DNA of 37,277 nt, from contig NIVC01003147.1 in the NCBI GenBank assembly GCA_002269645.1, positions 1 to 37,277 on the forward strand, given 5' to 3'. Below, one piece after another: positions 1 through 33,866 of this stretch. Each line of letters starts with the position of its first letter. Position 1 is the stretch's first letter. Under the pieces are notes generated by a model, which saw only the letters and a list, made by a program, of their open reading frames with translations, ran no database searches and was not told the origin of the DNA. Both the position numbers and the translations under genes were made by a program. The DNA is from Macrostomum lignano. Taxonomy: Eukaryota.

Positions 1-2317
1 CCGACTGTCTCTCCGTTCGAGACCAACAAGGAAGCACTCCCATCCATCTCGCTGCTGAGTTTCAGGGCGCCGATTCCATGCAGTTCTTCAAATCAGTCCT
101 CGGATCCGACTGCTTCCATCAGCCTGGCAATTGCCAACGCACTGCCATTCACCAAGCCGCTATGAATAAGAAGACTAACTCCTGTCTCAAGTGGCTGGTC
201 AACGAGTGCGGAACCGACTGTCTCTCCGTTCGAGACCAACAAGGAAACACTCCCGTCCATCTCGCTGCTTGGAAGCAGGGCGCCGATTCCATGCAGTTCT
301 TCAAATCAGTCCTCGGATCCGACTGCTTCCATCAGCCTGGCTACTTACAAGAAACTGCCATTCACTTGGCCGCTATGAATGAGACTAACTCCTGTCTCAA
401 GTGGCTGGTGAACGAGTGCGGAACCGACTGTCTCTCCGTTCGAGACCAACAAGGAGACACTCCCGTCCATCTCGCTGCTTGGAAGCAGGGCGCCGATTCC
501 ATGCAGTTCTTCAAATCAGTCCTCGGATCCGACTGCTTCCATCAGCCTGGCCGATTCCAACGCACTGCCATTCACTGTGCCGCTGAGAATGAAGCTACTA
601 ACTCCTGTCTCAAGTGGCTGGTGAACGAGTGCGGAACCGACTGTCTCTCCGTTCGAGACCAACAAGGAAACACTCCCGTCCATCTCGCTGCTTTCTGTCA
701 GGGCGCCGATTCCATGCAGTTCTTCAAATCAGTCCTCGGATCCGACTGCTTTCATCAGCCAGGCTGCGTACAACGCACTGCCATTCACTGGGCCGCTAGG
801 AATGAAGCTACTAACTCCTGTCTCAAGTGGCTGGTGAACGAGTGCGGAACCGACTGTCTCTCCGTTCGAGACCAACAAGGAAACACTCCCGTCCATCTCG
901 CTGCTTTGTTTCAGGGCGCCGATTCCATGCAGTTCTTCAAATCAGTCCTCGGATCCGACTGCTTCCATCAGCCTGGCCGATTCCAACGCACTGCCATTCA
1001 CTGTGCCGCTGAGAATGAAGCTACTAACTCCTGTCTCAAGTGGCTGGTGAACGAGTGCGGAACCGACTGTCTCTCCGTTCGAGACCAAGAAGGAGACACT
1101 CCCGTCCATCTCGCTGCTTTCTGTCAGGGCGCCGATTCCATGCAGTTCTTCAAATCAGTCCTCGGATCCGACTGCTTTCATCAGCCTGGCCGATTCCAAC
1201 GCACTGCCATTCACCAGGCCGCTATGAATGAGACTAACTCCTGTCTCAAGTGGCTGGTGAACGAGTGCGGAACCGACTGTCTCTCCGTTCGAGACCAACG
1301 AGGAAAGACTCCAGTCCATCTCGCTGCTTGGAAGCAGGGCGCCGATTCCATGCAGTTCTTCAAATCAGTGCTCGGATCCGACTGCTTCCATCAGCCTGGC
1401 TACTTACAAGAAACTGCCATTCACTTGGCCGCTATGAATGAGACTAACTCCTGTCTCAAGTGGCTGGTGAACGAGTGCGGAACCGACTGTCTCTCCGTTC
1501 GAGACCAACAAGGAAACACTCCCGTCCATCTCGCTGCTTTCTGTCAGGGCGCCGATTCCATGCAGTTCTTCAAATCAGTCCTCGGATCCGACTGCTTTCA
1601 TCAGCCAGGCTGCGTACAACGCACTGCCATTCACTGGGCCGCTAGGAATGAAGCTACTAACTCCTGTCTCAAGTGGCTGGTGAACGAGTGCGGAACCGAC
1701 TGTCTCTCCGTTCGAGACCAACGAGGAAACACTCCCGTCCATCTCGCTGCTTGGAAGCAGGGCGCCGATTCCATGCAGTTCTTCAAATCAGTCCTCGGAT
1801 CCGACTGCTTCCATCAGCCTGGCCGATTCCAACGCACTGCCATTCACTGTGCCGCTGAGAATGAAGCTACTAACTCCTGTCTCAAGTGGCTGGTGAACGA
1901 GTGCGGAACCGACTGTCTCTCCGTTCGAGACCAACAAGGAAACACTCCCGTCCATCTCGCTGCTTGGAAGCAGGGCGCCGATTCCATGCAGTTCTTCAAA
2001 TCAGTCCTCGGATCCGACTGCTTCCATCAGCCTGGCTACTTACAAGAAACTGCCATTCACTTGGCCGCTATGAATGAGACTAACTCCTGTCTCAAGTGGC
2101 TGGTGAACGAGTGCGGAACCGACTGTCTCTCCGTTCGAGACCAACAAGGAGACACTCCCGTCCATCTCGCTGCTTGGAAGCAGGGCGCCGATTCCATGCA
2201 GTTCTTCAAATCAGTCCTCGGATCCGACTGCTTCCATCAGCCTGGCCGACTCCAACGCACTGCCATTCACTGGGCCGCTAGGAATGAAGCTACTAACTCC
2301 TGTCTCAAGTGGCTGGT
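1..2317 (+). repeat. Coding tandem array of 210/213-nt units (70/71 aa, two ankyrin repeats each), about 11 units
   Basis: Alternating TPVHLAA and TAIHxAA ankyrin motifs on a near-invariant nucleotide scaffold. Confidence 0.95.
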
Positions 2318-3909
2318 TCAGCAACTCGGCCGGTCATGTCTTTTGAAACGAGGTTTTAACGGGATTACAGCGGCTCATCTGGCTGCTCAATATCAAGATG
2401 TCGAAACGCTCAGCTTCATCGTTGACTTACTGGGTGTCTCTGTCCTTGACCTACGGGATGCCTCGCACTTTCTTCCATGGAAGCGAAAGTCTGTTGCTGA
2501 CTACGCGAAGCTGAACTCTCGGCACGGGTCTCAGTTGACGCGGTGGATCGCTGAGCGGCGGCACCAGCAGAGGTCCCAGTCTGAGAAGACGCCGACAGTA
2601 CCGTAAGTTTTGTATGAAAAAAGCGGATATATTGGCACGTCTCTTATAGTGACATTAAAAATTGAATGCTGGATTTACGAGCTAATTAATAGCATTACAT
2701 TTTGAAAAAAAACTTTTTTGAACGAAGTCAAATCTTTTTTGTGGGCTGCATGCAATGCTCATAGAATATGATTTGCTTTGATTGGTTCTTAATTTTTATT
2801 TTCTTCAGAGATATAACAATGATCAGTTTAGGTTTAGTAAGGAAGAGATTATATATAATACAGTGTGCCCACAGCATTCCACGGCATCCCATAGCATTCT
2901 CGGGCAAAACTTCCCACAGAATCAGGCAAAGGTCTCCGGAGATTCTTGTTCTGCACTCATTGCTTCACACCCCGATCACCCTGCTGCATTCCAGACTCCA
3001 TGAGGATTTCTACCAGGTGACGAACCCGCAGGGATTCTGCCTCATCATCAACATCAACACGTACTCAACTGGCAGCGGCGAAGAGGAGCGCAAAGGCTCG
3101 GAGCGGGATGTGGACCGAGTGAGGAAGCTTTTCAGGAAGCTGAGTTTCACCATCAAGGAGGTGCAAAATCCCACAACTGCAGAGATCGATGACTTCCTCA
3201 ATGAGACAAAGAAGTCCAAGGAGCTCGCCAAGCACGGCAGTTTTGTCTGCTTCCTGATGGCCCACGGCCGCAAGGACCCACAGGGAAGGGACTGCATTAT
3301 CGATGGCCATGGAGTGCAGAGTCCGGTTCTGGAGCTCGCAGCCAAGTTCAAGGTGGGTCTGGTCTGGCTCATCTGTGCATATGATGCAAAGCATTGCAGC
3401 TCTACAAATTTCTACACATTTCCCAACCCTCCTCCAGGCCTCCGTCTGCCCCGACCTGGCGGGCAAGCCGAAGATCTTCTTTGTCCAGGCCTGCCGCGGC
3501 AGTGGCACAGACGAAGTGACGCACAGGGGACTGGCAGTCGACCAGCTGCCCCCAGAGTTCGCGCAGAACCCGGCCCTGTACCCGCCAGAGAGTGACTTCC
3601 TGTTCTGCTTCCCACCACAGAGGGTCAGGTGTCCTACCGCGACCCTCAGACTGGCAGCGTCTTCGTGCAGACCCTGTGCGACTACATCGAGCAATTTTAC
3701 ACAGAGAAGCACCTGGAGGACATCATGATTCTCGTGAAGCGGCACATGGCGGAGAAGCCGTGCGAGTTCAGAAACGAGAGAGGCGAACTTATAAAGTACT
3801 ATTGCGTTGCTCAGACCGTGTCACAGCTCGCTCGGCAGGTCTCCTTTGATCGAGCAAAGCTCAGAAGCGCTCACGGAGTCTGCAGCTGTTCAGCTTGGGT
3901 TCTCGTTGA
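3..3909 (+). CDS. Ankyrin-repeat caspase, paralog 1 (5'-truncated by window edge); join(<3..2602,2809..3352,3438..3909) with two 1-nt deletions versus paralog 2 in the last exon
   Basis: Frame is open from base 3 through >=23 ankyrin repeats. Donor CC|GTAAGT at 2603 and acceptor TTTCTTCAG| at 2808 join in frame to the caspase exon. Caspase motifs present: CLIINI, ERKGSERD, FLMAHG, KPKIFFVQACRG, DFL, VSYR. Missing T after 3613 and missing C near 3851 relative to paralog 2. Confidence 0.8.
2603..2808 (+). other. Intron 1 of paralog 1 (206 nt, phase 2) linking ankyrin exon to caspase exon
   Basis: GTAAGT donor, AT-rich body, TTTTATTTTCTTCAG acceptor. CC+A gives Pro, then DITMIS in the caspase frame. 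Confidence 0.85.
3353..3437 (+). other. Intron 2 of paralog 1 (85 nt, phase 0) within caspase p20
   Basis: AAG|GTGGGT ... CCTCCAG|GCC. Removal restores AAKFKASVCPDLAGKPKIFFVQACRG. Confidence 0.9.
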
Positions 3910-3994
3910 AAACATGTTGCAGAATCAGAGTGAAGTCTGTCATGTTATATTTGATGCTTATTAGCCACTTGTTAAGTTCTTGTCGTTTGATGTT

Positions 3995-5145
3995 GACTAC
4001 TTGATGCTTACTTGACTCTGCCTACTCTCTCATAACTGTGACCCCCAGTGACTACTTGATGCTTACTTGACTCTGCCTACTCTCTCATAACTGTGACCCC
4101 AGTGACTACTTGATGCTTACTTGACTCTGCCTACTCTCTCATAACTGTGACCCCAGTGACTACTTGATGCTTACTTGACTCTGCCTGCTCTCTCATAACT
4201 GTGACCCCCAGTGACTACTTGATGCTTACTTGACTCTGCCTACTCTCTCATAACTGTGACCCCAGTGACTACTTGATGCTTACTTGACTCTGCCTACTCT
4301 CTCATAACTGTGACCCCAGTGACTACTTGATGCTTACTTGACTCTGCCTACTCTCTCATAACTGTGACCCCAGTGACTACTTGATGCTTACTTGACTCTG
4401 CCTACTCTCTCATAACTGTGACCCCCAGTGACTACTTGATGCTTACTTGACTCTGCCTACTCTCTCATAACTGTGACCCCAGTGACTACTTGATGCTTAC
4501 TTGACTCTGCCTACTCTCTCATAACTGTGACCCCCAGTGACTACTTGATGCTTACTTGACTCTGCCTGCTCTCTTATAACTGTGACCCCAGAGACTACTT
4601 GATGCTTACTTGACTCTGCCTACTCTCTCATAACTGTGACCCCAGTGACTACTTGATGCTTACTTGACTCTGCCTACTCTCTCATAACTGTGACCCCCAG
4701 TGACTACTTGATGCTTACTTGACTCTGCCTACTCTCTCATAACTGTGACCCCCAGTGACTACTTGATGCTTACTTGACTCTGCCTGCTCTCTCATAACTG
4801 TGACCCCCAGTGACTACTTGATGCTTACTTGACTCTGCCTGCTCTCTTATAACTGTGACCCCAGAGACTACTTGATGCTTACTTGACTCTGCCTGCTCTC
4901 TTATAACTGTGACCCCAGTGACTACTTGATGCTTACTTGACTCTGCCTGCTCTCTTATAACTGTGACCCCAGAGACTACTTGATGCTTACTTGGCTCTGC
5001 CTGCTCTCTCATAACTGTGACCCCAGAGACTACTTGATGCTTACTTGACTCTGCCTGCTCTCTTATAACTGTGACCTCAGTGACTACTTGATGCTTACTT
5101 GACTCTGCCTACTCTCTCATAACTGTGAACCCAGAGACTACTTGA
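3995..5145. repeat. 54-55 bp minisatellite, about 21 copies
   Basis: Unit gactacttgatgcttacttgactctgcctactctctcataactgtgacccc(c)agt repeated head to tail with no spacers. Confidence 0.95.
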
Positions 5146-5639
5146 TTTTTTTCATCTACCTTTAGTTTTTCAGCTGATGGTACATATTATGTAGTGTTGC
5201 TACCGCATCTATTCAAGTTTTCATCTGCTCACTGTGCCTAAGTTACATTTTCAATTCCAATTGCAAGTCTCATTCTCAGCGCAAGACCAACTCCAAATAC
5301 ACAAATTAGAGCAGACTTTGCCGTCGCTACCAACAAAACTGAGAGCTGTTTTCTTAGAAACATGGATGCTGCCAGCTTCACTCAGAGACCGCCGAAATGA
5401 AAACGGGTTCGAGTCTAGGGAGGGAGGCGCAGAGAGACAATTGCGGCTTGAGAGCACAGGGTGCGGCTGTGCTCAGAGATTCGGTGCGGGGTGAAAGGCT
5501 GAGTATCTTCTCTCGCTGGCTGCAGCAGAGGCAACAATGATAAAAAGGCATCTAAACAGGCCAGGGCTGAGTCGCAGTGGCTGCCTATGCGACTCGATTG
5601 CAGCTCAACTCAAGCATGGAAGCCGTGCGAGACGCTTTT

Positions 5640-5698
5640 GTCTCTTTTTCTCTCTCTCTGTCTCTCTCCTTCTCTCCTCTCTCTCTCTGTCTCTCTCC

Positions 5699-5738
<40 letters not shown>

Positions 5739-6135
5739 CTCTCCTCTCTCTCTGTCTCTCTCCTTCTCTCCTCTCTCTGTCTGTCTCTCTCCTTCTCTCC
5801 TCTCTCTTTCTGTCTCGCTCCTTCTCTCCTCTCTCTCTCTGTCTCTCTCCTTCTCTCCTCTCTCTTTCTGTCTCGCTCCTTCTCTCCTCTCTCTCTCTGT
5901 CTCTCTTCTTCTCTCCTCTCTCTTTCTGTCTCTCTCCTTCTCTCCTCTCTCTCTCTGTCTCTCTCCTTCTCTCCTCTCTCTTTCTGTCTCGCTCCTTCTC
6001 TCCTCTCTCTCTGTCCCTCTCCTTCTCTCCTCTCTCTCCCTGTATCTCTCCTTCTCTCCCCTCTCTTTCTGTCTCGCTCCTTCTCTCCTCTCTCTCCCTG
6101 TCTCTCTCCTTCTCTCCTCTCTCTTTCTGTCTTCT
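5640..6135. repeat. CT-rich compound microsatellite
   Basis: ctctctccttctctcctctctct-type units, almost pure pyrimidine. Confidence 0.9.
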
Positions 6136-6221
6136 AACTTGACATTTGACAGGGTTTTTTCTGCAGTGGAGAAAAGAAGAATTAGCAATGCTCCTTGCCC
6201 TCATTGCTTTAGAATTAGCAA

Positions 6222-6740
6222 TGAAAGTCAGAGGGATTGGCATTGAGAGTCAGAGGGATTAACATTTAGAGTCAGAGGGATCGGGAATGAGAGTCAGAGG
6301 ATTGGCATTGAGAGTCAGAGAGATCGGGAATGAGAGTCAGAGGGATTGGCATTGAGAGTCAGAGAGATCGGGAATGAGAGTCAGAGGGATTGGCATTGAG
6401 AGTCAGAGAGATCGGGAATGAGAGTCAGAGGGATTGGCATTGAGAGTCAGAGAGATCGGGAATGAGAGTCAGAGGGATTGGCATTGAGAGTCAGAGAGAT
6501 CGGGAATGAGAGTCAGAGGGATTGGCATTGAGAGTCAGAGAGATCGGGAATGAGAGTCAGAGGATTGGCATTGAGAGTCAGAGAGGATTGGCATTGAGAG
6601 TCAGAGAGGATTGGCATTGAGAGTCAGAGAGGATTGGCATTGAGAGTTAGAGAGGATTGGCATTGAGAGTTAGAGAGATCGGGAATGAGAGTCAGAGAGG
6701 ATTGGCATTGAGAGTTAGAGAGATCGGGAATGAGAGTCAG
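6222..6740. repeat. 22-bp minisatellite with alternating A/B variants (44-bp higher order in its centre)
   Basis: gagagtcagagggattggcatt alternating with gagagtcagagagatcgggaat. Confidence 0.9.
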
Positions 6741-7442
6741 GTGAACTGATGCACTGGAAGTCACTATACGAGTATACTGTCCTAAAACTTGCTCAAGCCC
6801 TTTGAAGCAGAGCTGAGAAAGAGCGGTGAAACTGGAGGCGAGTAAAGTTGAGACGCAGATGCAGAGAAGACACCCTGCAAAAGCATTTGAGTTGAAACGA
6901 ATCCAAAATAATGATATTTTTGTTGTCAAGCGAGGGCTTTGACCCCGCCACCCCTCATTGCAGTTTATTCAAGTGGCCAGGACTGCCGCAGTAAAATGCT
7001 CTGGAAGGGGGGCGCGTCGGTTGCTAAAAACAGAGGGCTTGGGGTCTGTTTTCTTAGAAACGAAGCTGCATCTCTGTCATACAACCCGAAGCCACCCCCT
7101 ACCGTCCGAAGCTTTTTCTGCTGCTCAGCTGCCTCTGTGCTCAAAGCCTGCAGGGGCGGTGAGGTTGGTTGACTGTTCTCAACTCAGTGAAAAGAAAATG
7201 AGCATTCGAGTGTCTGTGAAGCTGAGCCCCAGCCCAGACCGAGAACGGCAATGACGCGTGACGCACTCCTAACTCCGATGCTGAGATTTAGAAGATTTTT
7301 TCAGGAAATTTAAAGTAACTTTTCCGCTTATGGCTACTGAAAGTAACTTTAAAGCATTTCACATGCTCCTGAAATGCAAGCAGCAGGCAGATGTGTAAGA
7401 AATCTGACACTGTGAGTGTACTTCAGAAGTCTGTGAATCTGC

Positions 7443-7830
7443 GTGATACTGTGTGATACTTTGTGATACTGTGTGAGACTGTGTGAGACTGTGTGATACT
7501 GTGTGATACTGTGTGATACTGTGTGAGACTGTGTGAGACTGTGTGATACTGTGTGATACTGTGTGATACTGTGTGAGACTTTGTGATACTTTGTGAGACT
7601 GTGTGATACTGTGTGATACTGTGTGAGACTGTGTGATACTGTGTGATACTGTGTGATACTTTGTGATACTGTGTGAGACTGTGTGAGACTGTGTGATACT
7701 GTGTGATACTGTGTGATACTGTGTGAGACTTTGTGATACTTTGTGAGACTGTGTGATACTGTGAGATACTGTGTAAGACTGTGTATGACTCTGTGATACT
7801 GTGTGATACTGTGCGAGACTCTGTGACAAA
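7443..7830. repeat. 10-bp tandem repeat
   Basis: ctgtgtgata / ctgtgtgaga units. Confidence 0.9.
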
Positions 7831-8289
7831 TGTGTGATGACTGTCTGTGAGACTGCGATACCGTGTGAGTGTTTGTAAAGAATGTCTGTGTGAGAATGGA
7901 TAAATTGTATGAAATTACTGATTCACTCGCGCGACAATGTGAATAAGGGGAGCCTTATCAAGCAGATCCATCTAGAAAAATTGTAATTTTTTAAACAGAA
8001 ATCGTCTGGAAACTTTAGAACTAATAAAACTGGCCTATATTAATCTTACACTGCTTGCAAGAAACCTAAAACGACATTAGAAGGTGAATAGACCCCCCTG
8101 ACTCGAGAGGGGCGTGTTTCGCAACTTCAAATATTACAAGCTCATAAATTCATCAGCTGCAATATCGAAAAAGTCACGAGTTTCATGTCTCTTGAGGCTG
8201 GCCTCGCTACACCTCGCAGCAACTTCGCGAAAAAGCAACACTTTTAGTCGGCATGCAACTTCACGCGCAAGTCATCAGCAACATCCTCA

Positions 8290-9273
8290 AGCCATCACCC
8301 CCCCCCCACTGTCCACAACCTGCTGTGGGAAAGCTCGGTATGCTTCATCTGAACAATGAAGTCCTCGGACATTTTTGTCGCAGGGACGATGAAAAAATTT
8401 CGTGTGACAATAAACGCTGGCCTTGGACTACACGTGCGCTCAGATGCCCTAATCCAAGGGATTAAAGGTCCGAAGTTGACGGCGGCCACATGCTGGGAGG
8501 CCAGTAGTCGGTCATCGCCCCGTCGAGGAAACGCCTCGTCGTTATGGAGCTCCATCCTGCTGTCACACATAGTTGCCATCCAGGAGCCTGCAGCAGCTGC
8601 TGGTACACTGCAACCCCTTCCGGCTGAACGGCACAAAGATCGCCGGCGCCTTCCGACCGTCAGTGAAGACGACTCCGACGATGGCCGCCAGAAGCTTTGC
8701 GGCGGTGATGCAGGAAATCTCGGTTGTTGCAGCGGTTGCGCACAGGGTCAACAGTAGAACAGTTTCTCGTCCGCGCGAAGACGATCGTGCGACCAGCGTC
8801 TCCGGCTCTTCATCCATATCAGCAGCAGATCGCGCGATCCCTGCTTTGCCTTCTGCGTCTCAGTAGCAAATGGCGAACTATCGAGCGCAGATGCAGGTCG
8901 TTCTTCATCGGTCGCTGCGTCAGATTTATGCATGAAAACTGACAATTATCGTTTTTTCGTGTATTTGCCCCTAATTGGGCCGTTTTATCGTTGTGCGTGT
9001 GTGCGCAGAACGTTTTCGCAAATAGGGCTTCTAAACATAGCCTCGCCCTCGCCTCAAGAAACCATCTTCCAACTGTTAAAACTTTGCTGCTAATTTTAGC
9101 CTCTGCTGCTCTTATATGTGTCAGTCCTTCAGTTCCGTGTTGGATTATTTGTACTACTACGCTCGTAGCAATTAGACACGCTGCATGGACATTGTTGCCG
9201 GCCAATTCGTGCTCTGTGGCGAGCTTTCTGATGGACGGTCGAGAGTTGCGTCGGATGTTGCCTTCCACAGCAG
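8290..9273 (-). mobile_element. Decayed Tc1/mariner (maT-like) transposase relic
   Basis: Across frameshifts and stops, in the expected order: IRRNSRPSIRKLA (HTH), IVF-DEKLF-TVD (~8765-8790), GVVFTDGRK, NYV*QQDGAP (8545-8562), WPPSMWPPSTSDL-NPLD (~8450-8500). Cut at 9273 by an LTR end. Confidence 0.7.
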
Positions 9274-12454: not shown

Positions 12455-15302
12455 ATGGAGCCGCGAGCCTCAATACGCGCATTGGTAGCTGCAGCACTCG
12501 CTGCCAAGGACCTGGACAGCCTCCTCGATCTCTGCTGGCAGCTCGACACCAACCATACCGTCAGCGTCAACCAGTTGGAGCAGTCCATTGCTCACCACGT
12601 GGCCTGCCTTCCCGACGGTCTAAGCTGCATGGAGGCTCTCATTGAGAAACTCGGAACCAAATGCCTCACCTGCACCAACGAGAAGATGAACACTCCAGTG
12701 CACCTGGCTGCCTTGTATCTAGATGAGTCATGGATGGAGCTCATTCACCGAAACCTCGGATGCGACTGCTTCCAGCAGCCTGGCTACATAAAACGCACTG
12801 CCATTCACTGTGCCGCTACGAATGAAAAAACTAACTCCTGTCTCAAGTGGCTGGTGAACGAGTGCGGAACCGACTGTCTCTCCGTTCGAGACCAAGATGG
12901 AGACACTCCCGTCCATCTCGCTGCTTGGAAGCAGGGCGCCGATTCCATGCAGTTCTTCAAATCAGTCCTCGGATCCGACTGCTTCCATCAGCCTGGCCGA
13001 CTCCAACGCACTGCCATTCACCAGGCCGCTATGAATGAAGCTACTAACTCCTGTCTCAAGTGGCTGGTGAACGAGTGCGGAACCGACTGTCTCTCCGTTC
13101 GAGACCAACAAGGAAACACTCCCGTCCATCTCGCTGCTTGGATGCAGGGCGCCGATTCCATGCAGTTCTTCAAATCAGTCCTCGGATCCGACTGCTTTCA
13201 TCAGCCAGGCTGCGTACAACGCACTGCCATTCACTGGGCCGCTAGGAATGAAGCTACTAACTCCTGTCTCAAGTGGCTGGTGAACGAGTTCGGAACCGAC
13301 TGTCTCTCCGTTCGAGACCAACGAGGAAAGACTCCAGTCCATCTCGCTGCTTGGAAGCAGGGCGCCGATTCCATGCAGTTCTTCAAATCAGTCCTCGGAT
13401 CCGACTGCTTCCATCAGCCTGGCCGACTCCAACGCACTGCCATTCACTGGGCCGCTTTGAATGAGACTAACTCCTGTCTCAAGTGGCTGGTGAACGAGTG
13501 CGGAACCGACTGTCTCTCCGTTCGAGACCAACAAGGAAACACTCCCGTCCATCTCGCTGCTTGGAAGCAGGACGCCGATTCAATGCAGTTCTTCAAATCA
13601 GTCCTCGGATCCGACTGCTTCCATCAGCCTGGCAATTGCCAACGCACTGCCATTCACTGGGCCGCTTTTAATGAAGCTACTAACTCCTGTCTCAAGTGGC
13701 TCGTTCAGCAACTCGACCGGTCATGTCTTTTGAAAAGAGGTTTTAACGGGATTACAGCGGCTCATGTGGCTGCTCAATATCAAGATGTCGAAACGCTCAG
13801 CTTCATCGTTGACTTACTGGGTGTCTCTGTCCTTGATCTAAGGGATGCTTCGCACTTTCTTCCATGGAAGCGAAAGTCTGTTGCTGACTACGCGAAGCTG
13901 AACTCTCAGCACGGGTCTCAGTTGACGCGGTGGATCGCTGAGCGGCGGCACCAGCAGAGGTCCCAGTCTGAGAAGACGCCGACAGTACCGTAAGTTTTGT
14001 ATGAAAAAAGCGGATATATTGGCACGTCTGTTACAGTGACATTAAAAATTGAATGCTGGATTTACGAGCTAATTAATAGCATTAAATTTTGAAGAAAAAA
14101 AAGATTTTTAAATGAAGTCAAAGCTTTTTTGTGGGCTGCATGCAATGCTCATAGAATATGATTTGCTTTGATTGGTTCTTAATTTTTATTTTCTTCAGAG
14201 ATATAACAATGATCAGTTTAGGTTTAGTAAGGAAGAGATTATATATAATACAGTGTGCCCACAGCATTCCACGGCATCCCATAGCATTCTCGGGCAAAAC
14301 TTCCCACAGAATCAGGCAAAGGTCTCCGGAGATTCCTGTTCTGCACTCATTGCTTCACACCCCGATCACACTGCTGCATTCCAGACTCCATGAGGATATT
14401 TACCAGGTGACGAACCCGCAGGGATTCTGCCTCATCATCAACATCAACACGTACTCAGCCGGCAGTGGCGAAGAGGAGCGCAAAGGCTCGGAGCGGGATG
14501 TGGACCGAGTGAGGAAGCTTTTCAGGAAGCTGAGTTTCACCATCAAGGAGGTGCAAAATCCCACAACTGCAGAGATCGATGACTTCCTCAATGAGACAAA
14601 GAAGTCCAAGGAGCTCGCCAAGCACGGCAGTTTTGTCTGCTTCCTGATGGCCCACGGCCGCAAGGACCCACAGGGAAGGGACTGCATTATCGATGGCCAT
14701 GGAGTGCAGAGTCCGGTTCTGGAGCTCGCAGCCAAGTTCAAGGTGGGTCTGGGTCTGGCTCATCTGTGCATATGATACAAAGCATTGCAGCTCTACAAAT
14801 TTCTACACATTTCCCAACCCTCCTCCAGGCCTCCGTCTGCCCCGACCTGGCGGGCAAGCCGAAGATCTTCTTTGTCCAGGCCTGCCGTGGCAGTGGCACA
14901 GACGAAGTGACGCACAGGGGGCTGGCAGTCGACCAGCTGCCCCCAGAGTTCGCACAGAACCCGGCCCTGTACCCTCCAGAGAGTGACTTCCTGTTCTGCT
15001 TCCCTACCACAGAGGGTCAGGTGTCCTACCGCGACCCTCAGACTGGCAGCGTCTTCGTGCAGACCCTGTGCGACTACATCGAGCAATTTTACACGGAGAA
15101 GCACCTGGAGGACATCATGATTCTCGTGAGGCGGCACATGGCGGAGAAGCCGTACGAGTTCAGAAATGAGAGAGGCGAACTTATAAAGTACTATTGCGTT
15201 GCTCAGACCGTGTCACAGCTCGCTCGGCAGGTCTCCTTTGATCCGAGCAAAGCTCAGAAGCGCTCACGGAGTCTGCAGCTGTTCAGCTTGGGTTCTCATT
15301 GA
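12455..15302 (+). CDS. Ankyrin-repeat caspase, paralog 2, intact; join(12455..13989,14199..14742,14829..15302), 850 aa
   Basis: About 12 ankyrin repeats (degenerate N-cap, 5 A/B pairs, C-cap). The same two GT-AG introns as paralog 1. Spliced length 2553 nt is in frame to TGA. His-Gly (AHG), QACRG, and S1-pocket Arg residues (RKGS, SYR) are retained. Confidence 0.88.
12690..13705 (+). repeat. Coding di-ankyrin array of paralog 2 (about 5 units)
   Basis: Same 210/213-nt scaffold as 1-2317. Confidence 0.95.
13990..14198 (+). other. Intron 1 of paralog 2 (209 nt, phase 2)
   Basis: CC|GTAAGT ... TTCTTCAG|A. Differs from the paralog 1 intron by small indels while the flanking exons keep frame. 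Confidence 0.85.
14743..14828 (+). other. Intron 2 of paralog 2 (86 nt, phase 0)
   Basis: AAG|GTGGGT ... CCTCCAG|GCC. 1 nt longer than in paralog 1, consistent with non-coding status. Confidence 0.9.
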
Positions 15303-15377
15303 AAAACTTCAGAGTGAAGCCTGTAATTTTACATTTGATGCTCATGTGTGACTGTTACGTTCTTGTTAATCGATGTT

Positions 15378-15518
15378 GACTACTTAATGTTCACTTGACC
15401 CCGTCTGCTCCCTCATAACTGTGGCCTTCAGTAACTACTTGTTCGCTTGACCCCTGCCAGCTCCCTCATAACTGTAACCCCAGAGACTACTGATTTTCAC
15501 CTGACTCTTGCCTGCTCA
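15378..15518. repeat. Two to three degenerate units homologous to the 54-55 bp minisatellite
   Basis: gactactt...cacttgacccc...ctccctcataactgt(g/a)...cag at the position equivalent to the array after paralog 1. Confidence 0.65.
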
Positions 15519-17829: not shown

Positions 17830-18981
17830 ATGCAGACTAAAGTAAATCCAACACGGACAGGCAATAGCAGGAGTCTCCCTGGCAGCCGGCTGCCATTGCT
17901 GCTGCTGCTTGTCCTGCTTGCCGTCTTCCTCTGCCTGAGCTCCTACGCCCCGAAGCTCAGCATCTACCAAATCAGCTTCCCGGTCTTCAACACGGATGAC
18001 GACTTCGCCGACTCCTTCGCCCGAGTGCTGCAGCGTCAGCAGTCGGGCCGCTGCCTTCACGAGTTCAACTCCAGCCTGAAGCTGCCACTGCTGCGACTCG
18101 ACTCACCAGCCGAGCTGGACCCGAAGATTCGAACCCGGGCCGCCGCGGCCTGGCTGCGCTCGTCTGTCGACGTAGTGTTCGCCGCCTCGGTGCGCAACGC
18201 CATGCGCGGACTGCCCGGCACCGCCCAGCAGATGCGGCGCCTCGCCGACAGCTTCCGCAGCGTCGCCTTCGTCTTCGTGGAGAACGACAGCGCGGACGAT
18301 ACGAGGCGCTTCCTGACCGACTGGCGCCGACGAGACGCCCGGGTGCGCCTGCTGGGTTGCGGGGGCGCCGACGCCGCGTGCCGCATGAACATCAGCTACT
18401 CCTCCGGCCGCGCCCACCGCCAGGGCTGGTCGCTGCCGCGCAACCAAGTCGAGAACCGCGAGCGCGGCATCGTGATGTCCGCCCTGAGGAACATCTACCT
18501 GCGCCACATCTACCGGCAGCTCTACAGACCCGACCGCGACTCCCTGCTCATCGTTGTGGATCCCGATCTCAGCTTCAAGCCGTGGGACCTGGACGCCATC
18601 CTGCAGGGCCTGTACTACTTCCGGGACAGGCCGGAGCTGCAGTCTCTGTGCGCCCACACCACGTCTCATGACGTCATCTACGACAACTGCACCCTGGTGT
18701 TCCAGCGCACCAGGCTGTTCTCCCAGGTCAGCCGCGAATCGACGATCGTCTCCGATTTCAACACGACGGCTCAGCCGCCCGGCCTGCCGCCCGTGAAGGT
18801 GGCCGGCTGCTTCCAGGCCTTCACCGCCTACCGATTGAGCCACCTGGCCGAACAGAAGCTCGAGTACGGACCGGCCCGAGGTGAGACCGTCTGCGAGCAC
18901 CTGACGCTGGCCAGACAGCTGATGGAGAACTACCTGGACCTGGGCAAGGAGGTTGTCAAGGAGAACGAGGGTGGTTTGTGA
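17830..18981 (+). CDS. Intronless type II membrane GT-A fold glycosyltransferase-like protein, copy A (383 aa)
   Basis: N-terminal hydrophobic anchor LLLLLVLLAVFLCL; FVENDSADDT; MSALRNIYL; DxD motif VVDPDL; VAGCFQAFTAY; CEH. High GC3. Confidence 0.8.
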   Translation: MQTKVNPTRTGNSRSLPGSRLPLLLLLVLLAVFLCLSSYAPKLSIYQISFPVFNTDDDFADSFARVLQRQQSGRCLHEFNSSLKLPLLRLDSPAELDPKIRTRAAAAWLRSSVDVVFAASVRNAMRGLPGTAQQMRRLADSFRSVAFVFVENDSADDTRRFLTDWRRRDARVRLLGCGGADAACRMNISYSSGRAHRQGWSLPRNQVENRERGIVMSALRNIYLRHIYRQLYRPDRDSLLIVVDPDLSFKPWDLDAILQGLYYFRDRPELQSLCAHTTSHDVIYDNCTLVFQRTRLFSQVSRESTIVSDFNTTAQPPGLPPVKVAGCFQAFTAYRLSHLAEQKLEYGPARGETVCEHLTLARQLMENYLDLGKEVVKENEGGL

Positions 18982-20237: not shown

Positions 20238-21416
20238 TCACGCATTGCCCTCGTTCTGCTTGACAACCTGCAGCTGCATGCCCAGGTCCAGGTAGTTCTC
20301 CGTCAGCTGTCTGGCCAGCGTCAGGTGCTCGCAGACGGTCTCCCCGCGTACTGGTCCGTACTCGAGCTTCTGTTTGGCCAGGTGGCTCAGTCGGTAAGCG
20401 GTGAAGGCCTGGAAGCAGCCGGCCACCTTCAGAGGTGGCAGGCCGGGCGGCGGCGACTTGGTGCGAAAGGCAGCGATGATCGGCGACTCCTTGCCGGCCT
20501 GGGAGAAGAACCCGTTCTGCTGGAACACCAGGGTGCACGGGTCGTAAATGTAACTGCCGTACCTGGTGTGGGCGCACAGGGACTGCAGCTCCGGCCTGTC
20601 CCGGAAGTAGTACAGGCCCTGCAGGATGGCGTCCAGGTCCCACGGCTTGAAGCTGAGATCGGGATCCACAACGATGAGCAGGGAGTCGCGGTCGGGTCTG
20701 TAGAGCTGCCGGTAGATGTGGCGCAGGTAGATGTTCCTCAGGGCGGACATCACGATGCCGCGCTCGCGGTTCTCGACTTGGTTGCGCGGCAGCGACTAGC
20801 CCTGGCGGTGGGCGCGGCCGGAGGAGTAGCTGATGTTCATGCGGCACGCGGCGTCGGCGCCCCCGCAACCCAGCAGGCGCACCCGGGGGTCTCGTCGGCG
20901 CCAGTCGGTCAGGAAGCGCCTCGTATCGTCCGCGCTGTCGTTCTCCACGAAGACGAAGGCGGCGCTGCGGAAGCTGTCGGCGAGGCGCCGCATCTGCTGG
21001 GCGGTGCCGGGCAGTCCGCGCATGGCGTTGCGCACCGAGGCGGCGAACACTACGTCGACAGACGAGCGCAGCCAGGCCGCGGCGGCCCGGGTTCGACTCT
21101 TCGGGTCCAGCTCGGCCGGTGAGTCGAGTCGCAGCAGTGGCATCTTCAGGCTGGAGTTGAACTCGTGAAGGCAGCGGCCCGACCGCTGACGCTCCAGCAC
21201 TCGGGCGAAGGAGTGGGCGAAGTCGTCATCCGTGTCGGGGAAGCTTCTAGCTGAGTATCGCGTGCTCAAACCCGAATAGATGACGCTTGAGCTCTGCAGA
21301 CAGATGTAGGCAAAAAGCATCCCGGACAAAAGCAGCAACACCTGCACCTGCAGCAGCGGCCTGCGGTTGCTCGAGAACCGTCTTGCACACGAACATGTAG
21401 CAGGGGGTCCGGGCAT
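20238..21416 (-). pseudogene. Glycosyltransferase-like copy B, inverted paralog, with one in-frame TAG (Trp to stop) at 20796-20798
   Basis: ORFs 20796..21416 and 20238..20753 share a frame. CAG GGC TAG TCG aligns to CAG GGC TGG TCG in copy A. Confidence 0.8.
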
Positions 21417-22573: not shown

Positions 22574-23601
22574 TTTGAGCTACTAGTTCCGGTGAAAGCT
22601 AGCTATAACCTGGAATTGGAAGTTTTTTTGCATTGCTTCTTATCGCATTTCGTAGGAACCAACTGGAATTTTCAGTTTTAAGACGCTGCATGAAGCTGCG
22701 AGCTGTCGGAATGGCTGAAGCTGGCACTTCTTGCAAGGCGATTGCGCCGATTTGCGCGTCACTTCGGGCGCGCGCCGAAGACGATCCGGGCAGCTGCTGG
22801 TCAAGGACGACTAAAGTAACGTATATTTAAAGTATATTAAAGTAAAGTATTTAAAGTAAAGTAAAGTATAACGTATATTTAAGTAACGTACTTAAGTAGT
22901 CCTTGATGCTGGTCAAGTGGCAACGCGCCAGCACAGTTGCCATGGCAACTCTGGCCGACTTGGCAGCTGCCACAGGACCGCATCAACAGACTCGTGCTTA
23001 GCATGCCACGGCGACTTGCTACCCTGCTTCATCGAGGCGAACACGCGCTACTGACTTCTAGCGAGAGACTGTCTGCATGCATGTGCACTTTTGTGCGATT
23101 ACGATGCACTTTACTGCTGCAGCCTGCTGCTGAGATGCAGTAGCTGTTACGCAACTCTGCTGAGCCGGCCGTGGCACCCAGCAAGCTGCGCCAGGGGTAG
23201 GGGGGTTTAGCTGTTGCTGGGACTGTAGCTTCTGTAATATCTCAAGGATGAGAGGTCAGAACGTACAGTATTGGGGGGCTATTAAACCGAATTTTTTTTT
23301 TATGTACACATCCCATATTAGTATGTTCTATTCTTATACAATGTGCTGAATGTGTGCACAATAAGCATCACTTTTGTCGCCATTAAAACCATCAGGAATG
23401 ATGGGAATCACAACAGCTTCATGTGTATTCTCCATGGCTGAGATCTTTTTCTTCGTTTTCTTTGGACTGCAGAGTTTAATGTTTTGGTCTTCTAAAGATA
23501 GGAAATATTTTTGCGCCATGGATTCTATTTTATTGCAATCAGCTCGATTTGACTGAACATATTTTGTCTACTTTTTTATATGGCCAAGGTGAAGTGTTTA
23601 G

Positions 23602-24481
23602 GTAGACAAGACACCAGTGTAAGTGCTCAGGTAGACAAGACACCAGTGTAAGTGCTCAGGTAGACAAGAGACCAGTGTAAGTGCTCAGGTAGACAAGACA
23701 CCAGTGTAAGTGCTCAGGTAGACAAGAGACCAGTGTAAGTGCTCAGGTAGACAAGAGACCAGTGTAAGTGCTCAGGTAGACAAGACACCAGTGTAAGTGC
23801 TCAGGTAGACAAGAGACCAGTGTAAGTGCTCAGGTAGACAAGAGACCAGTGTAAGTGCTCAGGTAGACAAGACACCAGTGTAAGTGCTCAGGTAGACAAG
23901 ACACCAGTGTAAGTGCTCAGGTAGACAAGACACCAGTGTAAGTGCTCAGGTAGACAAGACACCAGTGTAAGTGCTCAGGTAGACAAGACACCAGTGTAAG
24001 TGCTCAGGTAGACAAGAGACCAGTGTAAGTGCTCAGGTAGACAAGACACCAGTGTAAGTGCTCAGGTAGACAAGACACCAGTGTAAGTGCTCAGGTAGAC
24101 AAGAGACCAGTGTAAGTGCTCAGGTAGACAAGACACCAGTGTAAGTGCTCAGGTAGACAAGAGACCAGTGTAAGTGCTCAGGTAGACAAGAGACCAGTGT
24201 AAGTGCTCAGGTAGACAAGACACCAGTGTAAGTGCTCAGGTAGACAAGAGACCAGTGTAAGTGCTCAGGTAGACAAGAGACCAGTGTAAGTGCTCAGGTA
24301 GACAAGACACCAGTGTAAGTGCTCAGGTAGACAAGACACCAGTGTAAGTGCTCAGGTAGACAAGAGACCAGTGTAAGTGCTCAGGTAGACAAGACACCAG
24401 TGTAAGTGCTCAGGTAGACAAGACACCAGTGTAAGTGCTCAGGTAGACAAGACACCAGTGTAAGTGCTCAGGTAGACAAGA
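23602..24481. repeat. 29-bp minisatellite, about 30 copies
   Basis: gtagacaaga(c/g)accagtgtaagtgctcag with one dimorphic base and no spacers. Confidence 0.95.
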
Positions 24482-24973
24482 CTCAGTGCCAAACAATTCA
24501 AACAAAGAAGCAACCCAGACAACTCAGGTAGATAAAATTAATTAAAGTCCACAGACGAAAATGACACTAGAATGTAGCAGCGACAGCGAAGTGCCAGTTA
24601 ACTACACCAGCAATTGCTTATATTATATAGTAATTAGTACACTTGCTCTCGTGTCAGACAGTAAAAAATAGCTAGCAGCATCCCCACCGCCCAGCAGAAA
24701 CTGGGCAGGGGAGACTTAACACAATTTAACGGCAATTTACATAACTGGAGAACAGTGCAGATCTCAGCATAAAGTACTGCATGCACTGTGGCTGAGCTGC
24801 GGTACAGTAAGGAATTGCAGATGCAGCTGGCAGGGTAAATGCTTGCGTCAGGGCACTGAGAGCTCGGCATTCCTTGGGTTAATTAAAGCCGGAAAAAGCT
24901 ATGCTTTGTTTTAATCAGCATCCTGACGTTGCCAGCAAAGAATGATTCGCGAGTTCAGTGACTGAATGGCTGC

Positions 24974-25050: not shown

Positions 25051-25323
25051 ACTGGCTACTGGCAGTAGGATAAATGCGCATACTGGCTACTGGCAGTAGG
25101 ATAAATGCGCATACTGGCTACTGACAGTAGGATAAATGCGCATACTGGCTACTGACAGTAGGATAAATGCGCATACTGGCTACTGACAGTAGGATAAATG
25201 TACATACTGGCTACTGACAGTAGGATAAATGCGCATACTGGCTACTGACAGTAGGATAAATGCGCATACTGGCTACTGGCAGTAGGATAAATGCACATAC
25301 TGGCTACTGACAGTAGGATAAAT
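25051..25323. repeat. 31-bp minisatellite, about 9 copies (in the predicted intron)
   Basis: actggctactg(g/a)cagtaggataaatgcgcat repeated. Confidence 0.93.
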
Positions 25324-25898: not shown

Positions 25899-26564
25899 TT
25901 TTATGAAAGCGTCCATAAAGTTTGGGAGCTTCACAATTCCAACCCTCTCTCTGGTGGGGCTTCACAAGACCAAAACTTCATGAGACGGGAATTTCACAAA
26001 GTTAAAAATTCTGTATGGTCCTTGCTAAATTAAGTTTTCTATGGTGTGAAGTTCGGTCTATTCCCGTCTGGCTCAACCCCACGAGTGGATGTAGAAAGCC
26101 CCATGCCCAGCCTAGGCAGGATCCTGATTCACCGATTCACAGAAAAGAAAAGCTTAACTCGAAAAAAGTAATACCCATTCTGGGGTATCAATGGGCAAAA
26201 TAGTACCCCAAATCAGTTGGCTAATACCCCATGGGGTACTAATTGGGGTAAAAAACCATTGTTCGAACCAAAAGAAAAGGTTGCCTCTTTGGGCGCTAGA
26301 TTCACTTCTATTTATACTAAAATGAGGGGGGGGGGGTAAAGAAGCGCAAACAAAAAATAGAGAACCGTGAATACCTGGAAACTGCTGGGAATTCAAAATT
26401 GGCTCTCTCTCAATCCCTCACCCACCTTCATCATCCCTCACACAGCCTTATTACTCTCACCCAGCTTCATCACCCCACCAACTTAATCAACCCCCAAAAC
26501 CAACTTCATCATCCCACCACCCAGCTTCATCATGTCTCACTTAAAGAATCCGAGCCCAACTCAC

Positions 26565-28553: not shown

Positions 28554-28599
28554 TGGCGGCTGCTGCGGGGTTTGCAATAGACAATGACTAAATTAAAGA

Positions 28600-33537: not shown

Positions 33538-33866
33538 TACCTTGCCCCTATTGGAATAAGTTGACAAAATGCAGATGACCGTCCGTCGCATTTTTGGATT
33601 CTCCTGGTGTCGCGTCGCGCGACAGTGGTGTCAAGTGGTGTGTCGCGTCGCGCGACACTGTGGAAACTTGGTGTCATCATGCATTGTGTCGCGCGACACG
33701 ATACAACGAGACACGAAAGTGTGGCAACTTGGTGGCTGGTGTCGTCATGTGTCGCGTTGCAGCCTAGATCTGCAGCCAAAACCTCGCAAACTGTGTTTCA
33801 TTGTAATAATATGTTCACGGTTGTTTCTCGGTATTTAAATGTTTCAAACATGTTTGATAAAAACTA

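Follow-up and report, generated by a model that had tools for sequence, protein, structure and literature searches.

Near-identical ankyrin units with a few hypervariable codons, fused to a predicted caspase, in two tandem genes of the flatworm Macrostomum lignano

Platyhelminth caspases with ankyrin-repeat (ANK) prodomains were first found in Schistosoma (Lee 2014) and were surveyed in a study that reported them to occur in parasitic flatworms only and to be lacking in free-living species, placed one Macrostomum lignano caspase in a sister position relative to the clade of ANK caspases, and put forward the hypothesis that the flatworm ANK caspases function as initiator caspases and that an unknown partner recruits them (PMC11463336). 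Neither near-identical repeat units nor hypervariable sites have been reported for that clade. Both are features of the HIC repeats of fungal NLRs; among metazoan ANK, TPR, and WD repeats, HIC repeats account for just 0.8% (Dyrka et al.). In the ANK-N5C library of engineered ankyrin proteins, repeat positions 2, 3, 5, 10, and 13 are randomized (PMC4308713). For Macrostomum, no account of the family described here or of hypervariable ankyrin arrays was found in the literature.

The stretch of DNA analyzed here (the window) comprises positions 1 to 37,277 of M. lignano contig NIVC01003147.1 (assembly GCA_002269645.1); no tRNA or Rfam features were found within it. The first of its two ankyrin-caspase genes (copy 1, forward strand) begins with an internal array at positions 1 to 2317, for which Tandem Repeats Finder gives a 213-bp period, 10.9 copies, and 92% matches. 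Frame 3 of this region has no stop and codes for 11 units of 70 or 71 aa each, which start at 3, 216, 426, 639, 852, 1065, 1275, 1485, 1698, 1911, and 2121. Each unit (70/71 codons) consists of two ankyrin repeats, detected as such by Pfam (Ank/Ank_2), and the array leaves the contig at its 5' end, so that 11 units, i.e., at least 22 ankyrin repeats, is a lower bound. In the exon model, a C-terminal capping ankyrin repeat and a basic linker (2318 to 2602) end exon 1, a 2.6-kb uninterrupted open frame whose seeming stop codon overlaps the splice donor CC/GTAAGT at 2603. Intron 1 (GT...AG, 2603 to 2994) contains a further in-frame acceptor at 2808/2809. Exon 2 (2995 to 3352) codes for the N-terminal part of caspase p20, with the catalytic-His motif FLMAHG at ~3257, and is followed by intron 2 (AAG/GTGGGT ... 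CTCCAG/GCC, 3353 to 3437) and by exon 3 (3438 to 3728) with the caspase active site QACRG at 3486. The p10 region of copy 1 has a 1-bp deletion after 3613 (TGCTTCCC-ACC, where copy 2 and the second locus copy L001 have TGCTTCCCTACC), and the resulting frameshift leads to a premature stop at 3728.

Copy 2 (12455 to 15302, same strand) is a complete paralogue with a full model of 788 aa. It opens with a start codon and with capping ankyrin repeats at the N terminus (139 aa, 12455 to 12871; P0004 has the same beginning), which are followed by an internal array of 4 double-ankyrin units (12872 to 13701, with unit starts at 12872, 13085, 13298, and 13508) that has the scaffold of copy 1 but differs from it in the hypervariable residues. 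The C-terminal cap and linker (13702 to 13989) end exon 1 at a donor at 13990; exon 2 (14385 to 14742) codes for caspase p20 with MAHG at ~14647, and exon 3 (14829 to 15302) has QACRG at 14877, an intact p10, and the stop at 15302. Positions 2318 to 4136 form the left copy (forward strand) of an ~11.39-kb tandem segmental duplication and are 94.9% identical to 13705 to 15517, which makes the two genes tandem paralogues. The spliced exon model with the acceptor at 2994/14384 matches the annotated product P0001 exactly; for that reason, the acceptor at 2808/14198, which would give an 850-aa product, was dropped. Pfam finds Ank_2 (E = 3e-42) and Peptidase_C14 in the gene products, and the alignment of the caspase domain to caspase-3/7 (E = 1e-31) includes FLMAHG and QACRG. 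From these matches, the encoded protease is predicted to be a caspase-3/7-like member of Peptidase C14A, with the ankyrin array as its prodomain. No NOD, CARD, or DED domains were detected by Pfam in the complete copy-2 product.

A sequence-only reading of positions 1 to 2317 had described 70/71-aa units that are nearly invariant in DNA except for a few radically changing codons, and a per-codon table of the 15 window units (11 in 1 to 2317 and 4 in the second array, 12872 to 13701) bears this out. The scaffold is ~99% identical in DNA from unit to unit, and amino acid variation is concentrated in codons 9, 11, 19, 20, 43, 44, 46, 51, and 54 (codon n of a unit with start s begins at s+3(n-1)) and in a 2-codon indel spot at codons 56/57, the site of a 3-nt indel. 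Each of the nine hypervariable codons has 2 to 5 amino acid states in the window and 3 to 8 over all 25 DNA units, and the states are mostly 2 to 3 bases apart. Beyond them, the 15 window units show singleton replacements at 3 codons and synonymous-only variants at 7, the remaining 50 codons being invariant; 61 of the 71 codons are without amino acid variation. Segregating nucleotides occupy all 27 sites of the hypervariable codons versus 8 of 162 in the scaffold (Fisher p = 6e-26), and scaffold third positions, 6 of 54 of which segregate, likewise differ from the hypervariable 27/27 (p = 5e-16). The residues listed earlier for each site are correct, except that D (codon 9), WM (codons 19 and 20), and L/F (codon 54) belong to the second array only and do not occur in 1 to 2317. 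By the definition of HIC repeats (identity of 85% or higher among internal repeats across 100 aa or more), the window arrays belong to this class.

In ankyrin numbering, the variable sites are positions 3/5/13/14 of one repeat and 2/3/5/10/13 of the other. The earlier account of these positions needs a correction: in the A repeat, position 13, the first residue after "AA," is the only one after that motif to vary, and position 10, within TAIH-x-AA, is variable, too. Eight of the nine sites coincide with DARPin-randomized positions, taken straight from solved DARPin sequences (p = 3.7e-8), so the placement of the variation at DARPin-like, binding-face positions held up. It also agrees with an AlphaFold2 model built from the family alignment (pLDDT 96.4), onto which the variable sites were mapped: none of 11 lies in an outer helix, and they sit in the turn ahead of the inner helix, in that helix, or at its C-cap, with codons 56/57 in the loop just past the inner helix. 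A single-sequence AlphaFold2 model of the copy-2 ankyrin domain (pLDDT 44) was discarded in favor of the family-alignment model, whose best Foldseek matches are NOMPC, ankyrin-1/B, and DARPins. Solvent exposure of the variable sites was judged from their position and from the secondary structure in the model, which supports, as a prediction, their location on the canonical ankyrin ligand-binding face; other exposed positions (outer helices and loops) are invariant although they, too, are at the surface of the model. An invariant scaffold with a few hypervariable binding-surface codons, in an array fused to a caspase, is what both copies display.

The internal units are homogenized both within arrays and between loci. 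Scaffold nucleotide diversity is 0.4 to 1.9% within arrays and 1.1 to 1.5% when arrays of separate genes, located on separate contigs, are compared, whereas the capping repeats of those same genes are just 82% and 68% identical (18 to 32% diverged). This similarity of between-locus and within-locus values supports the concerted evolution that had been proposed for the scaffold. The variable codons form a finite set of cassettes recombined across units and genes: nearly every amino acid state is written with a single codon that is common to several loci, caspase genes and kinase genes (see below) have cassettes in common, and there are four-gamete violations between both repeats of a unit. That almost every state has one shared codon indicates inherited cassettes, and a hypermutation-type mechanism, DGR-like or somatic, was set aside as unlikely on the same grounds.

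A second copy of the locus (L001, 99.4% identical) has the same unit order as the window across 10 units, and 7 of the 8 array substitutions between them fall in codons 19, 20, and 54 of one unit. In copy 2, the unit count is 4 in the window and 3 in L001, with different cassettes and flanks that are 96% identical. These near-identical locus copies thus differ in their arrays almost solely at hypervariable codons and in unit number. Instead of being population alleles, the two may represent homeologues or contigs duplicated within one assembly. In L001, a run of N interrupts the copy, whose first units show indel noise, and both assemblies break within the long array. Annotated gene models drop units from such arrays; the genomic array of L003, for instance, has 13 units (26 repeats), of which annotated P0019 retains just 5.

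Purifying selection acts on the scaffold, where pN/pS is 0.06. At the hypervariable codons, where an excess of nonsynonymous change had been anticipated, pN is 0.43 versus a scaffold pS of 0.037, i.e., ~11-fold higher (jackknife range, 10- to 13-fold). In a noncircular replication, with sites set on one subfamily and scored on the DNA of the other, the excess was 8-fold and 11-fold in the two directions, and hypervariable pN exceeds scaffold pS by 8- to 14-fold across both subfamilies. These ratios point to diversifying selection at a few binding-surface positions, with pN/pS inside the hypervariable codons being just 1.0 to 1.5 (Nei-Gojobori counting), so that a claim of omega > 1 hangs on scaffold dS as the neutral reference, a quantity that concerted evolution itself lowers.

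The two window genes have many relatives. In M. lignano, 32 proteins join ankyrin repeats to a kinase or a caspase, and the Pfam content of the family is limited to these domains. Dozens of paralogues carry a like array fused to a STE20/MAP3K-like kinase, which, rather than the caspase, is the effector of most paralogues; this kinase is nearest to STE20/MST and ASK1. At E of at most 1e-30, the family comprises 20 clusters (50% identity), and those with a source name are all from M. lignano. Among the named top matches of the N-cap, there were no relatives outside M. lignano, except for one ankyrin protein from a bacterial MAG (33% identity); a few further N-cap matches, without a source name, were read as generic ankyrin matches and were not individually checked. 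The nearest relatives of the caspase domain are short-prodomain caspase-3-like M. lignano paralogues (47 to 48% identity), and no neodermatan ANK caspases, a group that is sister to the DED caspases, were recovered at E of at most 1e-10 in the caspase-domain search.

The explanation that we favor, and regard as probable, is that these genes are two tandem members of a large M. lignano family in which an N-cap, a variable number of units, and a C-cap are fused to an effector, yielding NOD-less one-chain sensor-effector receptors for ligands that are non-self or evolve fast. The scaffold would be homogenized, and the cassettes shuffled, by unequal crossing-over and gene conversion, while selection for diversity would keep the contact residues different, so that the long binding groove would differ from array to array. 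A ligand bound by the prodomain might then cluster or release the caspase (or the kinase), which could set off cell death or signaling. The evolutionary mechanism, with its homogenized scaffold, shuffled cassettes, and selection for diversity, is very likely correct; the immune or recognition-receptor function, which we infer, has slightly less than an even chance. The finite, shared, and seemingly old alphabet of states could mean stable functional specialization instead of an arms race.

The alternative that fares best keeps the same evolutionary mechanism but assigns the arrays to fast-evolving endogenous ligands, e.g., of sexual conflict and reproduction, germline transposons or viruses, or stem-cell-death regulators, which would make the proteins apoptosis or kinase regulators rather than immune receptors. 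Sexual conflict is studied in M. lignano as a model species, in which many fast-evolving genes are tied to reproduction, as this explanation would have it. The sequence data fit endogenous ligands and immune recognition alike, and the published initiator-caspase hypothesis, with its unknown recruiting partner (PMC11463336), would fit as well. However, the huge number of paralogues, their tandem clusters, and the swapping of effectors are more typical of non-self receptors than of regulators that have few partners, and we consider endogenous ligands unlikely.

A less probable alternative, with perhaps a slim chance of being right, is that the variable positions are merely unconstrained surface residues, of old divergence, that escape gene conversion while the scaffold is homogenized, with neither selection for diversity nor recognition; in one variant of it, clusters of mismatches might block heteroduplex repair and thereby spare the variable codons from conversion. 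The pN/pS near 1 (1.0 to 1.5) inside the hypervariable codons, the frequent differences at several adjacent bases, and the finite set of states, each written with one codon, as old variants rather than new mutations would be, are all compatible with such drift. Cassettes are found across units and loci, however, and are therefore not conversion-proof. The states at the variable sites are also far off the neutral codon expectation against which their composition was tested: among distinct states, Gly and Pro are depleted (3 of 113, p = 2e-4), as are Ala, Ser, and Thr (p = 1e-5), whereas Trp, Tyr, Phe, Arg, Lys, Leu, and Met occur in excess (p = 1e-3). In addition, a second subfamily with a different scaffold has its entropy peaks at identical ankyrin positions, the near-identical locus copies differ specifically at variable codons, and the outer helices and loops, exposed in the model, do not vary, all of which argues against mere drift.

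That the units are chimeras of collapsed or mis-joined long reads, or a decaying pseudogene array in a nonfunctional gene, is highly improbable: the position of the array at a contig end, the run of N and indel noise in L001, the p10 frameshift of copy 1, and the loss of units from annotated models (13 in L003 versus 5 in P0019) could be taken that way, but the 2.6-kb frame is free of stops, the window and L001 agree on unit order over 10 units, in-frame multibase codon replacements recur with the same codons elsewhere, which sequencing noise does not yield, a pN/pS of 0.06 shows purifying selection on the scaffold, and copy 2, P0002, and P0004 are intact.

If the favored explanation is correct, this would be the first clear animal case in which ankyrin repeats combine an invariant scaffold, hypervariable contacts, and concerted evolution, a combination that fungal NLRs are known for and that DARPin engineering imitates. 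A rapidly diversifying recognition receptor would be expected to have just this kind of design, a hypervariable ankyrin array fused to a caspase, which is undescribed in any animal caspase family. It would offer a concrete hypothesis for the role of the ankyrin prodomain of flatworm caspases, so far unexplained, and a candidate receptor repertoire for a phylum in which little is known about innate recognition, in a species that is experimentally tractable by RNAi and transgenesis. The arrays also provide natural data on the ankyrin positions that tolerate and exploit diversity, as well as a practical warning that arrays of this type break assemblies and are shortened by gene predictors.

Of the known ankyrin-kinase proteins, RIPK4/ANKK1, ILK, and TNNI3K likewise have both ankyrin repeats and a protein kinase domain, and ANKK1 is a weak match (P0118). 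However, these are single-copy conserved genes with mutually divergent ordinary repeats, and the kinase of the M. lignano paralogues, which have the order ANK-kinase with N-terminal ANK, is of the STE20/MAP3K group and not of the RIPK/TKL group. The sequence-only reading had also likened the arrays to TALEs, VLRs, and the HET-E repeats of fungal NLRs. With TALEs and VLRs, they share near-identical tandem repeats, few residues per repeat that set (or, here, would set) the specificity, and cassette recombination, but both resemblances turned out to be loose. TALEs read DNA by 2 residues per repeat in a known code, and lamprey VLRs are LRRs that are assembled somatically; in the assembly, each of the two window arrays forms a complete open reading frame.

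The resemblance to the Binz/Plückthun DARPins is one of design, not of descent. Like DARPins, the arrays have an invariant consensus-like framework with variation confined to positions 2, 3, 5, 13, and 14 or, as in ANK-N5C (PMC4308713), to positions 2, 3, 5, 10, and 13, and both the arrays and the libraries avoid Gly and Pro at variable sites and have caps at both ends. In contrast to DARPins, they are natural and germline encoded, their position 33 is not variable, and their cassette alphabet is limited, not fully randomized; they also have at least 22 repeats (26 in L003), compared with 2 to 5 in DARPin and ANK-N5C libraries. With the Platyhelminth ANK caspases, both copies, P0001, P0002, and P0004 share a flatworm ankyrin prodomain followed by caspase p20/p10. 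The genes described here come from a free-living macrostomid, which extends ANK-prodomain caspases beyond parasitic flatworms, contrary to the published survey (PMC11463336).

The closest match is to the HIC repeats of fungal NLRs, HET-E included. The M. lignano proteins differ from these in coming from an animal, in the unit, which is a pair of nonequivalent ankyrin repeats (35 + 36 aa) with two patterns of variable sites, in the effectors (a caspase or a STE20-like kinase), in having no NACHT or NB-ARC domain, and in the N-terminal position of the array, which is joined directly to the enzyme; since the copy-2 product has only Ank and Peptidase_C14, it is not an NLR. They share with the fungal proteins repeats that are >85% mutually identical, concerted evolution within and between paralogous loci, gene copies that differ in repeat number, a handful of hypervariable positions in the inner helix and the beta-hairpin/loop of the concave face, and the use of the same array type with different effector domains. 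We tentatively suggest, as a possibility somewhat below even, that M. lignano may have a previously unrecognized flatworm class of germline-encoded intracellular immune or non-self receptors, in which long DARPin-like arrays, their binding grooves spelled out by shuffled contact-residue cassettes, would be wired, NOD-less, to a caspase or a STE20-type kinase, so that the binding of a ligand would by itself set off cell death or signaling. Metazoans would in this case have converged on the HIC-repeat NLR strategy of fungi.

The array at positions 1-2317 has a period of 213 bp and 10.9 copies (Tandem Repeats Finder) and lies in a reading frame (frame 3) that is free of stop codons from the window start to 2602, codes for 11 units, each 70 or 71 residues long, and extends past the 5' end of the contig. 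Each unit comprises two non-equivalent ankyrin repeats, B (DQxGxTPVHLAAxxQG...) and A (PGxxQxTAIHxAAxN...), whose identity as ankyrin repeats is supported by Pfam. The same scaffold (the unit codons outside the hypervariable set) recurs in a second array, detected at 12872-13701 by Tandem Repeats Finder and translation. In a codon-by-codon table of the 15 units of both arrays, codons 9, 11, 19, 20, 43, 44, 46, 51, and 54 each show 2-5 amino acid states (3-8 over all 25 DNA units), which differ mostly by two or three bases, and codons 56/57 carry a 3-nt indel; the remaining codons include 50 invariant ones, 7 with synonymous changes only, and 3 with singleton replacements. Every nucleotide of the nine hypervariable codons (27 of 27) segregates, compared with 8 of 162 scaffold nucleotides (p = 6e-26) or, if scaffold third positions alone are counted, 6 of 54 (p = 5e-16). 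The hypervariability is real and far above chance expectation, which bears out the sequence-only reading of 1-2317 as nearly invariant units with a few radically changing codons. The residue states listed in that reading exist, but D at codon 9, WM at codons 19-20, and L and F at codon 54 are confined to the second array.

With ankyrin positions assigned by anchoring on TPLH and TAIH, the variable sites of the B repeat correspond to positions 3, 5, 13, and 14 (and also position 2 in a second, kinase-fused subfamily with a different scaffold, DCLTVPDxxGxTAVHLAAxHQGIESLEW...) and those of the A repeat to positions 2, 3, 5, 10, and 13, with the indel at 15/16. Selected binders among the solved DARPin sequences differ at positions 33, 2, 3, 5, 13, and 14, a set that includes 8 of the 9 variable sites (hypergeometric p = 3.7e-8). 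The ninth site, position 10, is among the five positions randomised in the ANK-N5C library (2, 3, 5, 10, and 13), assuming that the numbering of PMC4308713 equals that of DARPins; these positions were chosen as the highest-entropy ones of natural repeats, located in the beta-turn and helix 1 and forming a continuous binding surface (PMC4308713). The AlphaFold2 model of the ankyrin domain encoded by the second gene (copy 2), based on a 60-sequence family alignment, has a pLDDT of 96.4 and a pTM of 0.90, and its structural matches in the PDB are ankyrin solenoids only. According to the secondary structure of this model, all 11 variable codons fall in the turn preceding the inner helix, the inner helix, its C-cap, or (56/57) the loop after it; the outer helices and the short connecting helix hold none. 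The expected clustering on the ligand-binding face is thus seen at the level of secondary structure and of DARPin positions, and helix variation is present in the A repeat, but at positions 10 and 13 rather than 13 and 14, position 14 of that repeat not being variable.

By Nei-Gojobori counting on the units of the window, pN and pS are 0.43 and 0.29 (pN/pS 1.5) for the nine hypervariable codons and 0.0021 and 0.0375 (pN/pS 0.06) for the scaffold. Replacement diversity at the hypervariable codons is ∼11x the synonymous diversity of the scaffold (10-13x in the jackknife, 16x after Jukes-Cantor correction). The excess is 8x for sites defined solely on second-subfamily proteins and scored on the window DNA, 11x for sites defined on the window and scored on 17 second-subfamily units (contigs L003 and L004), and 12x in the kinase gene of another locus, L002, which carries the window-type scaffold; it is not circular, because sites defined on the other subfamily also yield it. 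The predicted replacement excess was therefore recovered relative to scaffold pS, but strict omega > 1 depends on using scaffold dS, itself lowered by concerted evolution, as the neutral reference, because pN/pS inside the hypervariable codons reaches only 1.0-1.5, apart from 3.6 in one small array. The states at the variable sites are strongly non-random, which speaks against pure neutrality: Gly and Pro account for 3 of 113 distinct states versus 13% expected (p = 2e-4), Ala, Ser, and Thr are depleted (p = 1e-5), and there is an excess of Trp, Tyr, Phe, Arg, Lys, Leu, and Met (p = 1e-3). Also against pure neutrality, other positions on the solenoid surface do not vary.

Within arrays, the scaffold has a nucleotide diversity of 0.4-1.9%; comparing the caspase-gene arrays with a kinase-gene array on another contig gives 1.1-1.5%, whereas the ankyrin repeats flanking the arrays share only 82% (N-caps) and 68% (C-caps) identity between these genes. 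Internal units have therefore been homogenised between loci, and the concerted evolution first proposed for this one array is generalised to the whole family. Nearly every amino acid state at a hypervariable codon has a single codon, whole A-repeat cassettes (e.g., AATTGC-CGC-CAT-ACG) are common to caspase and kinase genes, and four-gamete violations abound between the two repeats (B and A) of a unit but are seldom seen inside a single repeat. All three patterns argue against hypermutation and point to a finite pool of inherited cassettes that would be shuffled by recombination in an invariant scaffold. L001, from assembly GCA_002269645.1, is a second copy of the locus with 99.4% identity across 6.6 kb and the same unit order. 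Its array carries eight substitutions: seven affect codons 19, 20, and 54 of a single unit, where FC is replaced by WK and R by V, and the eighth is synonymous. The copy-2 gene of L001 has three units versus four in the window, with different cassettes and 96% identical flanks. Within the long array, units 639-851 and 1485-1697 are 100% identical in DNA and some others 98-99% identical in a non-collinear order, which indicates recent duplication or conversion inside the array. Both assemblies break within the long array. In the ANK-kinase gene of L003 (NIVC01000558.1, 10445-13180), 13 internal units form one open frame and the annotated protein, P0019, has only 5; gene predictors take parts of such arrays as introns, and published proteomes therefore undercount the repeats.

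The ORFs 3' of the array match Peptidase_C14, the caspase family (Pfam), and the apparent stop past the copy-1 array overlaps a consensus splice donor (CC/GTAAGT) at 2603. The spliced copy-1 model (exons 3-2602, 2995-3352, and 3438-3728) reproduces exactly the 1082-aa protein P0001 annotated on this contig; copy 2 (exons 12455-13989, 14385-14742, and 14829-15302) encodes a complete 788-aa protein that runs from an ankyrin N-cap through four internal units to a C-cap, which a short basic linker connects to a caspase domain. This domain contains both catalytic motifs, FLMAHG and QACRG, and its nearest solved structures are caspase-3/7 (E = 1e-31); no NOD, CARD, or DED domains were found by Pfam. 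The Asp-containing tetrapeptide LHED/, which directly follows the exon junction between prodomain and caspase (2995-3006 and 14385-14396), could be a candidate caspase processing site between the ankyrin prodomain and p20. The two genes are tandem paralogues inside an 11.39-kb segmental duplication. A 1-bp deletion after 3613 (window 3606-3620; compare 14997-15012) truncates the p10 region of copy 1, leaving P0001 with a frameshifted tail; copy 2 and L001 (protein P0002) lack it. It may reflect either haplotype-specific pseudogenisation or an indel error in the long reads.

Between and beyond both genes lies a dense series of minisatellites, at 3994-5146 (54-bp x 21), 5649-6132 (29-bp x 16), 6214-6740 (22/44-bp x 24), 7439-7844 (10-bp x 40), 23592-24482 (29-bp x 31), and 25051-25323 (31-bp x 9), with copies mostly 94-97% identical. 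Two near-identical inverted GC-rich (about 60-66%) ORFs, at 17830-18981 (plus strand) and 20238-21416 (minus strand), encode a signal-anchor protein weakly similar to CAP59-type mannosyltransferases and look like a head-to-head gene duplication. The minus-strand ORF at 26541-28577 (678 aa, G+C about 72%) carries an RRM domain at its C terminus and long low-complexity tracts of Ala, Pro, and Gln. At 29000-37277, G+C falls abruptly to 20-35%; a putative retrotransposon gag-like ORF, called by eye from the sequence, lies there on the minus strand (34118-34522).

The ankyrin architecture is common to 32 M. lignano proteins, a few with caspase domains and about twenty-five with C-terminal protein kinase domains, which keep the VAVK, HRD, and DFG motifs intact and are nearest to kinases of the STE20/MST and ASK1 types. 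When the family-specific N-cap served as query in an exhaustive search, 20 clusters (50% identity) were returned at E <= 1e-30; the top matches with a named source are all from M. lignano except for a bacterial MAG ankyrin protein with 33% identity, and a few others are nameless. The non-Macrostomum matches are read as probable generic ankyrin similarity. The nearest relatives of the caspase domain are short-prodomain caspase-3-like paralogues of M. lignano (47-48% identity), and no neodermatan ANK caspase was among the matches of the caspase-domain search. In a 2024 survey, ankyrin-prodomain caspases were described as forming a clade confined to parasitic flatworms and missing from free-living ones; all that it reported for M. 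lignano was a caspase whose prodomain is kinase-like and which branched sister to this clade (PMC11463336). The window genes are ANK-prodomain caspases in a free-living flatworm, and this distribution therefore needs revising. The caspase array of L001 is preceded by a run of N (an assembly gap), and just upstream of this gap, at 7400-8830, is the 5' portion of an ANK-kinase gene that matches the N terminus of the family protein P0031 but contains indel noise; the ANK-kinase and ANK-caspase genes are therefore neighbours. It is a speculation that a gene model bridging such neighbours may have produced the "kinase-prodomain caspase" of the survey (PMC11463336).

Very probably, then, the arrays combine concerted evolution of the scaffold with diversity that is kept and reshuffled at the binding-face residues. 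A tentative suggestion, given somewhat less than even chances on the basis of the architecture and the evolutionary signature, is that the array acts as a receptor for non-self or other fast-evolving ligands. The array would form a variable ligand-binding groove whose occupancy could activate the attached enzyme through induced proximity or release of autoinhibition, and the family would serve recognition of such ligands. An immune or allorecognition function and a specificity "code" are hypotheses, made more plausible by the fusion of the arrays to caspase and kinase domains. In fungal NLR-like proteins, highly internally conserved WD, ANK, and TPR repeats are polymorphic in number, are exchanged between loci, show positive selection on their concave face, and come with swapped effector domains; such repeats are rare in animals (0.8%) (PMC4986451). 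The regime proposed for the M. lignano arrays is the one described for these fungal repeats. Unlike the fungal proteins, however, the M. lignano family occurs in an animal host, is devoid of any NOD domain, and has an N-terminal array that is fused directly to a caspase or a STE20-like kinase and built from units of two repeats with two distinct patterns of variable sites.
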